A stretch of 64,000 nt of DNA from NCBI GenBank assembly GCA_965112155.1, contig OZ218101.1; one strand, written 5' to 3'. Positions 1,070 through 11,062 of this stretch are shown one piece after another (the stretch's first letter is position 1; the number at the start of each line of letters is the position of its first letter). A program made the translations under genes and the position numbers. The notes under the pieces are model-generated. The model ran no database searches and was not told where the DNA came from. It was given only the letters and a program-made list of their open reading frames with translations. The DNA comes from Podarcis liolepis. Lineage: Eukaryota.

Positions 1070-1620
1070 TGAGGAGATTTCACCCCTCCCATACCCAAGA
1101 ATCTCCTGACCATCTCCTGATGATTTCTGCTGACTCCACAGAGAAGAGGAGGCGTGTCCTGCCTATTAACTTATTCTGCCCAGCAACATATCTGTGTGTG
1201 AGAGAGAGAGTCAGTCAGTCAGTGTATCGGAGAGAGTGAGAGTGTTAGAGATCCTAGAGATAATATTGCTGCTAAGAGCAGCTGCAGACTCTCAGTGTAG
1301 CATTGCTTTATGCTCAGAATATTTAGCTCTGTATATAGTTTTGTACCATAGTTGTAGTTATAGAATAAAAGGAAGATATTTTACAGAGCTGCTCTCCGAG
1401 TGGTTTATACTCTGCAAGACTCTGCAAAACTCTGCTGCGCAACGACTGAATTATTGAGACAGTGAATCCGGTGCTCTCAGCTCTAAGCTGTGAGTCCACA
1501 GCACTGTGACCGTTTCCTGTGGGAAGGAGGTCTCTGGCGGTGCTACCCAGCTCGCCCAGCCCAGTCGGGGTTGAGGTGCAAGAGTCCAGTTGGTGCACTG
1601 GCTCTAGGGCGATGCTGACA
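1070..1620 (+). repeat. 5' LTR of the Copia element
   Basis: TGAGGAGA...GCTGACA, a direct repeat of 4799-5349. TATTAA at 1164-1169 and AATAAA at 1364-1369. Confidence 0.96.
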
Positions 1621-1622
1621 TC

Positions 1623-1636
1623 GGTTATGGGCCCAG
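1623..1636 (+). promoter_or_regulatory. Primer-binding site complementary to the internal anticodon-arm region of initiator tRNA-Met (half-tRNA priming)
   Basis: GGTTATGGGCCCAG lies 2 nt after the 5' LTR. It is the reverse complement of CTGGGCCCATAACC in tRNAiMet, the PBS type used by Drosophila copia. Confidence 0.9.
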
Positions 1637-1979
1637 TCGTTGTTCCAGTCATCTGACCTGACGTTGTCCCAGGTGTCCCAGTCGTCCCAGTCGCCAGAGG
1701 TTTCTGTTGCTGATTGCCGGACGGTGGAACGGACGCTGCATGCTGGACTGATTTGTGGTGCCCAGAAGCAGAGCTGTTTTGGAGCAGAGTATTCAAGCTG
1801 CCGCTGTTGCTGTTGCTGCTGCTTGATTTATGGAGGTATGTTTCTGACTGCCAAAGGAAGAAGATAGCATCCCTGTTTGCCTGTTAATTGCGCTGTGAGT
1901 GGGAGAGAGAGTGGCTGAAGGAGTCAAGGCTTTATCTGTGTTGCACGAGGGAAGTGTCTTGCTCTAAGTAATAGCAGAC

Positions 1980-4520
1980 ATGGCCTGTGCACATTCTGGC
2001 CAGATGGCTCTGTCCTTTCCCCTCCTGACGCCTGTAAACTATGGAGTTTGGCAAGTAAAGATGAAAGTGCTTTTACAGAGGGAAAAGCTATTTCACACGA
2101 TAGAAGATGACCCTCCAGATAAGGATGATGATGATTGGGCTGAGTGGCATGCTGCAGATATGAAAGCCCGAGGGACAATTGTTTTGAGTGTTTCAGACCA
2201 CTTGCTGGTGAACTTAGAGGGTCAAGAGACTGCACAAGCTGTTTGGCATAAGTTGAGAGATATGCATCTGAGGCAGAATGCTGGTTCCAGTGTGATTTTC
2301 TTTAAGAAGCTGTGCAGGCTGCAGTTGGAGAAAGGTGGTGATTTGCCTAGCCATCTATCTCAATTAAAGCGTCTCAGACAAGACCTTGTTCAGCGAGACC
2401 TGGCTATTTCAGAGGCTGTGTTTGCAATGCTAATGATCAATAGCCTGGATGAGTCTTATGATGGAGTGGCTGCCCAGATTTCTACAATGCCTTCTGACCG
2501 GCTAACAGAAGATTATGTGTCTAGCGTGCTCCTGAATGAGTGGGATCGCAGACAGACTGTTAAAGAAAGCCGGGAAAACTGTGCTATTAAAAATCTGCTT
2601 GAAAAAGTGCCTGAGTCTTCAGCAGGGGAAAGTGAAAGTAAAACTGCTGCTGTTAAAGCTTTGAAATTGAAGCGCTGCTTTTCGTGTGGAGCACAAGGCC
2701 ATTTGAGTTTCCAGTGCAAAAAGTCTTCAAAGAAGAAGGGAAACTTCAGAGGCAGAGGGGGAGGAGGAAGAAATCCCCAAGGACCTGCTACTTCAAAGGC
2801 CTTGATCTCTTGCTGTTCCAGTCAACGTGGGCGGAGTTTCTTCGTGGTCGACTCTGGCTGTTCAAACCACGTGGCCAAAGATAAGAATCTCTTTGTTCAG
2901 CTTGAGAAGCAAGAGAAAGAAATTCATCAAGCAGATGGGACAGTTCTCACAAGTGTGGCTCAGGGAACTGTGTTCTTAAAGAGCCTGAATGCAACTATTA
3001 AGAATGTCCTGTATGCACCTGATATTCAGGACAATTTATTGAGTGTTTCCCAGCTTGATCGTCAAGGGTTTAAGGTGGTGTTTGCTAAATCTCGCTGTGA
3101 AATTCTTAGAGATGGCAAGCTCATTCTGTATGCAAAATGTGTAAATGGACTGTACCAATTGCCTTTTGTTTCAGGTACAGGCACTGCAGAAGCAACTGAG
3201 AAAGAGTGTTGCAATTTATCTGTAGATAAGAATGAGAAGTTGCATGACCAATGTATTCATTATTATCACCGTATTTATGGTCATTTGGGTTTCCAGGCTG
3301 TGGCAAAAATGCCTGATATGGTTCAGGGTATGAGGTTGAAAGAGTGTCCCTACCACATGAAATGTGTTTCTTGTGCTGAGAGTAAGGCAAGGCAAGCTCC
3401 CAAAGGTACAGAGTCTGGGAGAGAGGCCAAGAAACCATATGAAGTCATTCATGCAGACTTAGTGGGGCCTCTAGCGCTCTCTAGAGGCAATTCAAGGTTT
3501 TTCATGGTTCTGATAGACTCCTATTCAAAATATGTTTGGGTCTATGTGCTGCAGAAAAAGTCTGAAGCCTTTACCAAGTTTCGCCAGTTTTGTAAATGGC
3601 TCAGAAATGTACATAATGAGAATGTGCGTTTTCTTTTCACAGACAAGGGTGGAGAGTTTTGTTCAGAAGAGTTTGAGAGTTTTCTTTCTGAACAGGGCAT
3701 TGAGCATAGGACCGCCACGCCCAGATCACCCTGGCAGAATGGTTTATGTGAGAGAGTAAACCAGACCCTGCAGCAAGGAATCAGAACGCTGTTACATGAT
3801 TCAGGACTGCCCAATCCTTTTTGGGCCGAAGCTCTTTCGTTTTTCTGTCACGTGTATGACAGGAGGTACCAGTCTAGTGTAAATTGCACCCCATATGAGA
3901 TGCTTCACGGAAGAAAGCCATGTGTAAAGCATTTTAAAATTTTTGGTTCAGAGGTTTGGGTGCACACCTCGCAAGGTGACAAACTGAGCAAGCGTGGAGA
4001 ACATGGTATTTTCCTAGGATATGAGAAAGGGTCTTATCGTGTTCTGATCACAGACACGAAAACCATAAGGCTGACCAGGAGTATTGATGACAATCCACAA
4101 TGGGACAGAGTTGGCGTTTTTCAGTATCATCCCATTTGTGATGATGGTGCAAAAGGGGCAAAGAAAGTTAAGAGAGAGGCAAGTGTTATTGGTGGTGATA
4201 ATCCTGATGCCAATGTATTTCCAGATGGTGGCACAGATTATCAGAGCCCAAAAGCCTCAGGTGAGTCTGATGCTGACTCAGACTTAGCAGCTTCATATAC
4301 TTTAGCTCCCCATTCTCCCAAAGAGGAGGAAGCACCAGAACAAGAGAATCAGAGAGTTTTGCGCAGATCCGAGAGAACAACCAAGGGTGTACCACCGAAA
4401 AGGTTTTCTGAAGAGTTTGCAAAGACTGCGGTCACGAGCAACTCTGGTGGAGTTTTTAAACCAGGCATGAAGTGTGCTGAGAGTGGTAGCACAAAACGCT
4501 TTATTTATTTCCTTACCTGA
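1980..4520 (+). CDS. Copia Gag-protease-integrase polyprotein, 846 aa, with no RT/RNase H
   Basis: Gag N-terminus (LTPVNYGVWQVKMKVLL, KARGTIVLSVSD), CCHC knuckle CFSCGAQGHLSFQC, protease FVVDSGCSNH, HHCC (HRIYGH...CVSC), integrase D,D-35-E (HADLVGP / TDKGGEF / QNGLCER), SH3-like GIFLGYE and linker LRRSERTTKGVPPKRF, followed by a stop. No YVDD or other RT motif. Confidence 0.95.
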   Translation: MACAHSGQMALSFPLLTPVNYGVWQVKMKVLLQREKLFHTIEDDPPDKDDDDWAEWHAADMKARGTIVLSVSDHLLVNLEGQETAQAVWHKLRDMHLRQNAGSSVIFFKKLCRLQLEKGGDLPSHLSQLKRLRQDLVQRDLAISEAVFAMLMINSLDESYDGVAAQISTMPSDRLTEDYVSSVLLNEWDRRQTVKESRENCAIKNLLEKVPESSAGESESKTAAVKALKLKRCFSCGAQGHLSFQCKKSSKKKGNFRGRGGGGRNPQGPATSKALISCCSSQRGRSFFVVDSGCSNHVAKDKNLFVQLEKQEKEIHQADGTVLTSVAQGTVFLKSLNATIKNVLYAPDIQDNLLSVSQLDRQGFKVVFAKSRCEILRDGKLILYAKCVNGLYQLPFVSGTGTAEATEKECCNLSVDKNEKLHDQCIHYYHRIYGHLGFQAVAKMPDMVQGMRLKECPYHMKCVSCAESKARQAPKGTESGREAKKPYEVIHADLVGPLALSRGNSRFFMVLIDSYSKYVWVYVLQKKSEAFTKFRQFCKWLRNVHNENVRFLFTDKGGEFCSEEFESFLSEQGIEHRTATPRSPWQNGLCERVNQTLQQGIRTLLHDSGLPNPFWAEALSFFCHVYDRRYQSSVNCTPYEMLHGRKPCVKHFKIFGSEVWVHTSQGDKLSKRGEHGIFLGYEKGSYRVLITDTKTIRLTRSIDDNPQWDRVGVFQYHPICDDGAKGAKKVKREASVIGGDNPDANVFPDGGTDYQSPKASGESDADSDLAASYTLAPHSPKEEEAPEQENQRVLRRSERTTKGVPPKRFSEEFAKTAVTSNSGGVFKPGMKCAESGSTKRFIYFLT

Positions 4521-4784
4521 TATTTGAAAAGGAAAGCGTGTATTTGAGTTCTGTAAAATGGTTTGTTCAAATCTGCCTAATTAGAAATGTCAATTTGTAT
4601 TTGAGAGGAAGAAATGTGTATGAAGATTTTTCTAGAAGCTGCTTATTCAATGGTATTGTAAAAGTGTGTTATATGCTGGGAAGAGAGATACCTGCATATG
4701 TTAACCAAGGTTGTAAGCAGAGAACAACTTTTGGAGTGTGTGTGCAAATTGCAGTGATGTTAAAGATTCTTGAAATGGTCGGAT

Positions 4785-4798
4785 GAAATGGGGGAGGA
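4785..4798 (+). promoter_or_regulatory. Polypurine tract
   Basis: GAAATGGGGGAGGA immediately precedes the TG of the 3' LTR. Confidence 0.85.
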
Positions 4799-5349
4799 TG
4801 AGGAGATTTCACCCCTCCCATACCCAAGAATCTCCTGACCATCTCCTGATGATTTCTGCTGACTCCACAGAGAAGAGGAGGCGTGTCCTGCCTATTAACT
4901 TATTCTGCCCAGCAACATATCTGTGTGTGAGAGAGAGAGTCAGTCAGTCAGTGTATCGGAGAGAGTGAGAGTGTTAGAGATCCTAGAGATAATATTGCTG
5001 CTAAGAGCAGCTGCAGACTCTCAGTGTAGCATTGCTTTATGCTCAGAATATTTAGCTCTGTATATAGTTTTGTACCATAGTTGTAGTTATAGAATAAAAG
5101 GAAGATATTTTACAGAGCTGCTCTCCGAGTGGTTTATACTCTGCAAGACTCTGCAAAACTCTGCTGCGCAACGACTGAATTATTGAGACAGTGAATCCGG
5201 TGCTCTCAGCTCTAAGCTGTGAGTCCACAGCACTGTGACCGTTTCCTGCGGGAAGGAGGTCTCTGGCGGTGCTACCCAGCTCGCCCAGCCCAGTCGGGGT
5301 TGAGGTGCAAGAGTCCAGTTGGTGCACTGGCTCTAGGGCGATGCTGACA
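4799..5349 (+). repeat. 3' LTR of the Copia element
   Basis: Matches 1070-1620 except C5249 versus T1520 (by eye; the ORF track also shows PAGNG versus PTGNG). AATAAA at 5093-5098. Confidence 0.96.
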
Positions 5350-5848
5350 AAGCATCCCTTTGCCAGAGGCTTGGTGGAGAATGCGGCTGGAGGAAAAACC
5401 CTTTGTGTGTATGAAATGGAGGTTGCCAGGGTGATGATGAGTAATGATGTAACAAAAAAAGGGGGGTTGTGTTTGGCAAGGTGTTCTTGGAAGAAGTCAG
5501 AAGTAGGGGGACGTCATGTGGGGGCTGAGGAGAAGAAGCCAACAGCATGAGGCACAGGAAGCATGCACTGCTGAATCAGCTCCTTGCAGATTGGAGCTGG
5601 CTGCTCTTAAGAACCCTCTCTATGTGTATATATGTGTGTAAATAAAGCCATAAATTGTGTAAATAAAGACACAAAAAGTCGGACACAACTAAACGACTAA
5701 ACAACAACAAATAAAGCCATGCATCTTAAAAACACTACAGCTTCCACCATGCCTAATTTTCTAGATGAAAACACAACCTTTGGTGAGTGTCTGGAACCCC
5801 CTGGAGTCTTCTCACCTCTTGGAAGAGATTGGGGGTGGTGTGTAACAT
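5350..5848 (+). mobile_element. Older LTR-like remnant (Gypsy-type) interrupted by the Copia; its left part is about 1030-1069
   Basis: Ends ...GTGTAACA. Its TGTAAATAAAGCCAT and GTGTCTGGAACCCCCTGGA segments resemble the minus-strand LTR at 33588-34157. Confidence 0.5.
5652..5708 (+). mobile_element. Extremely 5'-truncated Bov-B (RTE) insertion
   Basis: AGTCGGACACAACTAAACGACTAAACAACAAC matches the Bov-B 3' ends elsewhere in the window. Flanked by the duplication AAATAAAGCCAT (5640-5651 and 5709-5720). Confidence 0.8.
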
Positions 5849-10636: not shown

Positions 10637-11062
10637 TGTTGTTGTTGTTTAGTCGTTTAGTCGTGTCCTACTCTTCGTGACCCCATGGACCAGAGCACGC
10701 CAGGCACTCCTGTCTTCTACTGCCTCCTGCAGTTTGGTCAAACTCATGCTGGTAGCTTTGAGAACACTATCCAACCATCTCGTCCTCTGTCGTCCCCTTC
10801 TCCTTGTGCCCTCCATCTTTCCCAACATCAGGGTCTTTTCCAGGGAGTCTTCTCCTCTCATGAGGTGGCCAAAGTATTGAAGCCTCAGCTTCAGGATCTG
10901 TCCTTCCAGTGAGCACTCAGGGCTGAATTCCTTAAGAATGGATAGGTTTGATCTTCTTGCAGTCCATGGGACTCTCAAGAGTCCAGCACCATAATTCAAA
11001 AGCATCAATTCTTCGGCAATCAGCCTTCTTTATGGTCCAGCTCTCACTTCCATACATCACTA
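10637..11062 (-). mobile_element. Bov-B (RTE) LINE 3' fragment
   Basis: LRVPWTARRSNLSILKE...LKLRLQYFGHLMR...LEKTLMLGKMEGTRRRGRQRTRWLD, plus a (CAA)n tail. Confidence 0.93.

Follow-up and report, generated by a model that had tools for sequence, protein, structure and literature searches.

How could a retrotransposon that encodes no reverse transcriptase (RT) have inserted so recently that its two long terminal repeats (LTRs) are still nearly identical? This question is raised by a Ty1/copia element of the lizard Podarcis liolepis, which occupies positions 1070–5349 of a 64,000-nucleotide stretch of contig OZ218101.1 (assembly GCA_965112155.1); the whole stretch was analysed and is referred to here as the window. 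The element has kept one long open reading frame (ORF) for Gag, protease (PR) and integrase (IN). We are confident that it represents a young insertion of an RT-less squamate Ty1/copia lineage, which is propagating and is mobilised in trans. The evidence is provided by the structure of the element, by an RT-bearing relative (protein P0002) that reveals which part was lost, and by four further RT-less proteins that share the same deletion junction.

Overall structure of the element

The complete LTR element comprises 4,280 bp on the + strand, as read directly from the sequence. It possesses the long direct repeats, TG..CA ends and 5-bp duplication that characterise Ty1/copia, and is composed of the following parts, flanked by the target-site duplication (TSD).

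1065–1069, +: TSD AAGCA, 5′ copy (direct reading; the same 5-mer is found at 5350–5354)
1070–1620, +: 5′ LTR, 551 bp, TG...CA, identical to the 3′ LTR at 550 of 551 positions
1621–1979, +: untranslated leader, with three CCCAGTCG octamers within (1632, 1677, 1686)
1623–1636, +: candidate primer-binding site (PBS), 14 nt, starting 2 nt past the 5′ LTR (direct reading)
1980–4520, +: single 846-codon ORF (Pfam and alignments)
4464–4537, +: deletion junction zone (tblastn of P0002, pairwise alignment, Pfam of P0002)
4538–4770, +: decayed remnant of the pol C-terminus, RNase H end (comparison with P0002)
4785–4798, +: putative polypurine tract, adjoining the 3′ LTR, with a strict purine run at 4790–4798 (direct reading; function assigned from position)
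4799–5349, +: 3′ LTR, 551 bp, identical to the 5′ LTR at 550 of 551 positions
5350–5354, +: TSD AAGCA, 3′ copy (direct reading)

The sole difference between the two LTRs (T1520 versus C5249) lies within a CpG, and one change in 551 positions corresponds to a divergence K of ~0.0018. At an assumed squamate rate of ~1e-9 substitutions per site per year, the insertion has an age of the order of 1 million years, with a very wide interval. The age is possibly lower, because the single LTR change is a hypermutable CpG transition. An earlier reading of the same stretch, made from the letters alone and referred to here as the original prediction, had described a very young 4,280-bp insertion with a perfect TSD and one CpG difference between its LTRs. 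Direct reading of the sequence and the 550/551 LTR identity agree with this description.

The Gag-protease-integrase ORF

The ORF extends to a stop codon at 4518–4520 and contains the following regions, given in amino acids (aa) of its translation.

aa 28–193, +: Gag (Pfam PF14223)
aa 233–246, +: CCHC zinc knuckle, C233/C236/H241/C246 (Pfam and alignment)
aa 288–364, +: protease, Pol_BBD/Pol beta-barrel, with DSG at 291–293 (Pfam PF22936)
aa ~422–602, +: integrase, composed of the zinc finger (H430/H435/C462/C465) and the core (D493, D555, E591) (rve PF00665)
aa 643–702, +: SH3-like domain, SH3_retrovirus (Pfam PF25597)
aa 795–809, +: RRSER..PPKRF motif in the linker, which is followed by 37 codons to the ORF end

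The order of the Pfam matches (PF14223, PF22936, PF00665, PF25597) is that of a copia-type Gag, protease and integrase. The catalytic and zinc-binding residues were compared in a Copia-wide alignment of 12 diverse polyproteins, composed of the window ORF and 11 other Copia proteins, ten of these at 22–29% identity. All of them sit in invariant columns, except G293, which is at least 90% conserved. The CCHC, DSG, HHCC and D,D-35-E residues that had been read from the 846-aa translation are thereby confirmed by both Pfam and alignment.

In contrast to this complete upstream part, no Pfam match to RVT_2 was found in the 846-aa ORF. The integrase lies upstream of the RT position, as indicated by the RNase H tail remnant downstream of IN and by P0002, in which IN is followed by RVT_2. 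The ORF ends 37 codons past the RRSER..PPKRF motif and leaves 278 bp between its stop and the 3′ LTR, exactly as had been reported.

The deletion and the remaining pol tail

P0002, which was found by protein search in an ENA assembly, is an RT-bearing relative of 1,338 aa with 67% identity and an RVT_2 domain at aa 861–1103. Homology runs from residue 8 of P0002 to residue ~830–845, corresponding to window 1974 to ~4463–4496, and ends just before RVT_2. It resumes only over the last ~100 residues of P0002, out of the ORF frame. This tail matches P0002 aa ~1241–1272 and 1300–1316 in a frame other than that of the ORF, shifts frame near 4712 and then matches aa 1317–1338, reaching the ancestral pol stop. 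Within the tail ~25 codons are absent relative to P0002, and ~75 decayed codons of the pol C-terminus are left in the element. Judged from this comparison, the loss comprises about 395 codons (~1.2 kb; P0002 aa ~845–1240), from the first RT residues to the middle of RNase H.

Pfam analysis of the tail ORF (4538–4783) shows no domain and no RVT_2, and together with the lack of RVT_2 in the 846-aa ORF this upholds the original prediction that RT/RNase H is absent. The element is therefore a derivative of the Ty1/copia family rather than one of its autonomous members. The length of the 278-bp spacer was also given correctly, but the spacer is not anonymous; it holds the decayed remnant of the pol C-terminus. 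An in-frame tail match at 4524–4547 was rejected, being out of order with the stronger match.

The lesions of the tail represent real decay, because P0002 and a more distant lizard (Elgaria) protein both keep the tail colinear; the two proteins align over it with a one-residue gap, no frameshift and ~49% identity. The identity of the element's tail to P0002 is ~44%. Dating the deletion as ancient from this low identity was rejected, since ~44% versus ~49% is not decisive, whereas the frameshift and the gap are. Because the tail carries both a frameshift and a ~25-codon gap, the immediate parent of the element could not encode a functional RNase H.

The best named match to the RT of P0002 is a lizard (Elgaria) protein, at 57%. 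A separate observation concerns P0197, an 'uncharacterized protein' of Elgaria multicarinata webbii in NCBI. Its first ~390 residues consist of Copia RT–RNase H pieces with an internal gap, followed by the endonuclease/RT of a long interspersed nuclear element (LINE), and the annotation is probably an artefact of a gene model that spans nested repeats.

RT-less relatives

Four distinct 845-aa proteins from Logan assemblies (P0001, P0042, P0043 and P0044) are 96–97% identical to the window ORF and end in the same post-junction peptide and stop. They show 2–5 differences among themselves and 30–32 from the window copy (~3.7% protein divergence), and carry one in-frame codon deletion relative to the window ORF. 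These relatives are known as proteins, from independent assemblies. Their contigs measure 3,146–3,172 bp, with one of 3,766 bp, and the corresponding lengths in the window element are 3,178 bp for the LTR-to-LTR interior and 3,729 bp for the interior plus one LTR. From the lengths alone, the contigs seem to end at LTR boundaries, in an element whose interior is equally short.

Because the four other proteins share the junction and the stop, the deletion predates both the split between the two subgroups and this insertion. Near-identical LTRs in an element that was already RT-less, with a broken RNase H tail, mean that RT/RNase H came in trans. Supply of RT in trans had been proposed before, and the deletion, older than the insertion and common to the four 845-aa proteins, now supports it. 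Three hallmarks of a non-autonomous lineage are present: RT/RNase H is absent, several copies share the deleted structure, and transposition took place after the loss.

No relatives were found among viral contigs and JGI metagenome contigs, and a search with the C-terminal 207 aa returned no short fragments continuing into RT. The family is isolated in a library of 1.84 billion representatives, in which the next cluster has at most 35% identity. Other Copia elements contain many Gag-PR-IN ORFs of 650–900 aa, which at the protein level are indistinguishable from ORFs cut by a stop. P0004, from an unrelated Copia at 27% identity, is an 826-aa Gag-PR-IN protein without RVT_2, encoded on a 4,728-bp ENA contig that approximates a whole short element. 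It may represent a separate RT-less lineage, or simply a reading frame interrupted by a stop codon.

Leader, LTR signals and insertion site

The 5′ LTR contains TATATA at 1332–1337 and AATAAA at 1364–1369, candidate promoter and poly(A) signals, respectively. The candidate PBS (1623–1636) presumably pairs with the anticodon arm of vertebrate initiator tRNA-Met and not with the 3′ end of that tRNA. Priming by tRNA-Met in the copia group is attributed to Kikuchi 1986, as cited in PMC7773854. ARAGORN detected no tRNA genes in the 64-kb window, and Rfam detected neither an RNA family within the element nor a tRNA-like U5. The window contains no further copies or solo LTRs of the element.

The octamer CCCAGTCG has five matches in the window, all within the element, compared with 0.31 expected. 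They are located at 1560–1567 (U5), 1632–1639, 1677–1684, 1686–1693 and 5289–5296 (3′ LTR). Besides the copies in U5, one overlaps the candidate PBS in its 3′ part and two stand in tandem in the leader. The octamer might provide additional contacts for the primer tRNA, or serve in packaging or dimerisation.

The ORF at 106–1239 (+, 377 aa) contains the C-terminal half of Exo_endo_phos, the LINE endonuclease (Pfam), and runs into the 5′ LTR. The Copia element is inserted into this older LINE fragment, and no host gene is visibly affected, because the element sits in or after the LINE endonuclease ORF. Elsewhere in the window, the ORF at 10649–11008 (−, 119 aa) resembles, by eye and from its translation, the C-terminal end of an RTE/BovB-type LINE ORF2, a type common in squamates.

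Constraint on the retained ORF

The comparison of the five RT-less proteins tips the balance slightly toward a retained Gag-PR-IN ORF that would be functional and contributing. In the Copia-wide alignment, the columns at which these proteins vary are less conserved than the rest (mean conservation 0.37 versus 0.455; one-sided permutation P 0.035), and the 141 most conserved columns contain 3 of their 33 variable sites, compared with 5.5 expected. The sole indel among the five proteins is in frame. In addition, the only frameshift struck the ~250-nt tail, whereas the ORF, ten times as long, has none (~0.09 by position alone). Avoidance of conserved columns, the in-frame indel and the tail-only frameshift point weakly to constraint.

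Alternative explanations

The RT-less lineage may be moved in trans as a passive passenger, an ordinary Copia deletion derivative whose ORF is intact only through its youth and whose proteins are irrelevant or inhibitory. We regard this as a real possibility, although not the favoured one. Several points weigh against a trans-mobilised lineage that uses its own ORF, and some of them speak directly for such a passenger. The implied nucleotide divergence between the two subgroups is only ~1.7%, and neutral simulation to 31 aa differences (~44 substitutions) leaves the ORF stop-free in 21% of runs (P 0.21). Because the stop-free state is not significant under neutrality, ORF intactness by itself proves little, and the intact ORF alone was rejected as proof of selection. 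The relatives were found because they are intact, an ascertainment bias in favour of intact ORFs, and the conserved-site test is weak, with three differences nonetheless located in highly conserved columns. One of the three is N627D in the integrase of the window copy (window 3858–3860), at a position where Asn is present in all four RT-less relatives and invariant among the 11 further Copia proteins in the alignment. The window copy also has R278C and C716Y compared with the relatives and the outgroup, and may be slightly impaired or not a master. In yeast, Ty1 elements devoid of all ORFs can still be mobilised in trans, so that none is needed in principle. Moreover, a helper whose LTR termini or PBS correspond was not observed in the 64-kb window, and the nearest RT-bearing protein is 67% identical. 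LTR families commonly contain deletion derivatives and 'dead on arrival' copies (PMC9744471). Against the passenger stand all five known members, which keep the full frame and every catalytic residue, together with the in-frame position of the single indel, the modest avoidance of conserved columns by variable sites, and a frameshift that struck the short tail and spared the ORF.

The other alternatives are far less probable. Each RT-less copy could derive anew from a full-length master, through splicing or through template switching while the RNA is reverse-transcribed, with no self-perpetuating lineage; a fixed common junction is also expected from a splice, and Drosophila copia and barley BARE make spliced subgenomic RNAs. 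This origin is nevertheless very improbable, as a master with the frameshifted, ~25-codon-gapped tail would have no functional RNase H end of its own, 5.8 billion clustered proteins include no near-identical protein with RT, and a splice removing RT–RNase H alone gives no Gag excess, which is the purpose of such splicing. Still less credit is given to a one-off event, either a deletion in this copy after its insertion or an assembly collapse near 4430–4540, the two circumstances that the original prediction had named as fatal to it. Nothing was found in favour of such an event. The junction peptide and stop recur in four non-identical proteins from independent assemblies, the tail carries additional old lesions, and the near-identical LTRs leave little time for both deletion and tail decay after insertion; the one-off reading is largely refuted. 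A host gene domesticated from a Copia Gag-PR-IN would account for a long intact ORF without RT, yet it is scarcely credible for a sequence that has near-identical LTRs, PBS, polypurine tract and TSD, sits in a LINE fragment and exists as several slightly different copies on contigs breaking at LTR borders.

Proposed origin and mobilisation of the lineage

An RT-less lineage mobilised in trans would have arisen when an internal deletion removed from its ancestor ~1.2 kb that encoded RT and most of RNase H. What was left of RNase H would have decayed later, while the upstream Gag-protease-integrase frame stayed complete. For mobilisation, the 5′ LTR would drive a ~3.7-kb RNA, which would be translated into Gag-PR-IN. 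This RNA, with or without its own Gag and IN, would enter particles holding the Gag-Pol of a co-expressed RT-bearing Copia. The helper RT/RNase H would then copy it, using the tRNA primer site and the polypurine tract, resulting in identical LTRs, and an integrase, either its own or that of the helper, would insert the cDNA with a 5-bp duplication. Given the structure of the element, its lack of RT, the young age of the insertion and the shared older deletion, the use of a helper particle and a helper RT follows necessarily, in outline. Production and use of the element's own proteins (Gag, PR, IN) are only inferred, as is the identity of the helper.

A further-reaching and rather unlikely proposal is a two-component vertebrate Copia, in which a long-lived RT-less partner would keep Gag, PR and a working IN under purifying selection, provide particle and integration functions itself, and borrow only the polymerase, from a distinct RT-bearing Copia. 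If true, it would mean either that the two partners divide the labour or that a hyperparasite is in competition with its helper for integration. Neither arrangement is described for any LTR retrotransposon in the literature searched.

Non-autonomous LTR elements are known mainly from plants and retain nothing, Gag, or Gag-protease. A vertebrate Copia that drops only its polymerase would, if true, mean that the functions of a retroelement can be split at a different point, and such a lineage would be a natural setting in which to find out which proteins work in cis, on their own coding RNA. In addition, surveys based on RT/RNase H miss RT-less copies, so that the Copia load and its recent activity in lizards and snakes may be undercounted.

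Comparison with known systems

Copia elements occur in reptiles but not in birds or mammals (PMC4350176). In a 2025 survey of 263 metazoan genomes, squamates were the richest group, with Copia in 23 of 24 species and up to 7,000 copies; squamate Copia has been recently active, and Mtanga is the only clade reported there (PMC11889832). The window element resembles these squamate Ty1/copia elements (Mtanga; PMC11889832) in host group, copia-type Gag/PR/IN, 5-bp TSD and recent activity, and differs from them in having no RT/RNase H. The survey classed elements by RT/RNase H and did not mention non-autonomous forms (PMC11889832). Because of this classification, RT-less copies were invisible to it.

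The closest parallels in organisation come from plants. Among the semi-autonomous elements of Triticeae, RLG_Sabrina_SA keeps Gag-protease and RLG_Quinta keeps Gag, with RLG_Wilma and RLG_Cereba as partners, which were recognised through common PBS, LTR termini and timing (PMC9744471, PMC11302176). Like the window element, these are RT-less lineages with an intact structural ORF, recent amplification and a presumed autonomous partner; however, they are plant Gypsy elements without integrase, whereas the window element is a vertebrate Copia with a complete integrase. In sugar beet, 15 non-autonomous families contain at least one partly decayed POL domain (PMC13570524). TR-GAG and other plant non-autonomous LTR elements likewise retain coding capacity (PMC13570524). 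The POL remnants of such plant elements are partly decayed, in contrast to the complete PR and IN with all catalytic residues observed here. Barley BARE-2 has no functional Gag and keeps pol, and is thus the mirror image of the window element. BARE-2 and BARE-1 are a Copia pair in which the defective element depends on its autonomous relative, as cited in PMC13570524.

Drosophila copia shares the single gag-pol ORF and the order PR-IN-RT. Its PBS matches an internal part of the initiator tRNA-Met rather than the 3′ end, according to Kikuchi 1986 as cited in PMC7773854. Unlike the window element it is autonomous, and the protein identity is far lower. Mouse ETn/MusD and IAP I-delta-1 offer a parallel among vertebrate LTR elements: their deleted forms are the most active ones and rely, in part or entirely, on full-length relatives. 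These are endogenous retroviruses, from which parts of gag, pro and pol are removed differently, and none of them is known to retain exactly Gag-PR-IN without RT.

In the open literature searched, no report was found of a lineage with complete integrase that lost only RT/RNase H, nor of one in a vertebrate; Repbase/Dfam may already list the family. The original prediction had put forward a two-component system, of which the RT-less, trans-mobilised lineage stands, while a particle and integration of the element's own making are a reasonable hypothesis. Plants are known to have semi-autonomous LTR elements that keep Gag or Gag-protease, so that two-component systems have precedents in kind; the intact integrase and the vertebrate host are the unusual parts.

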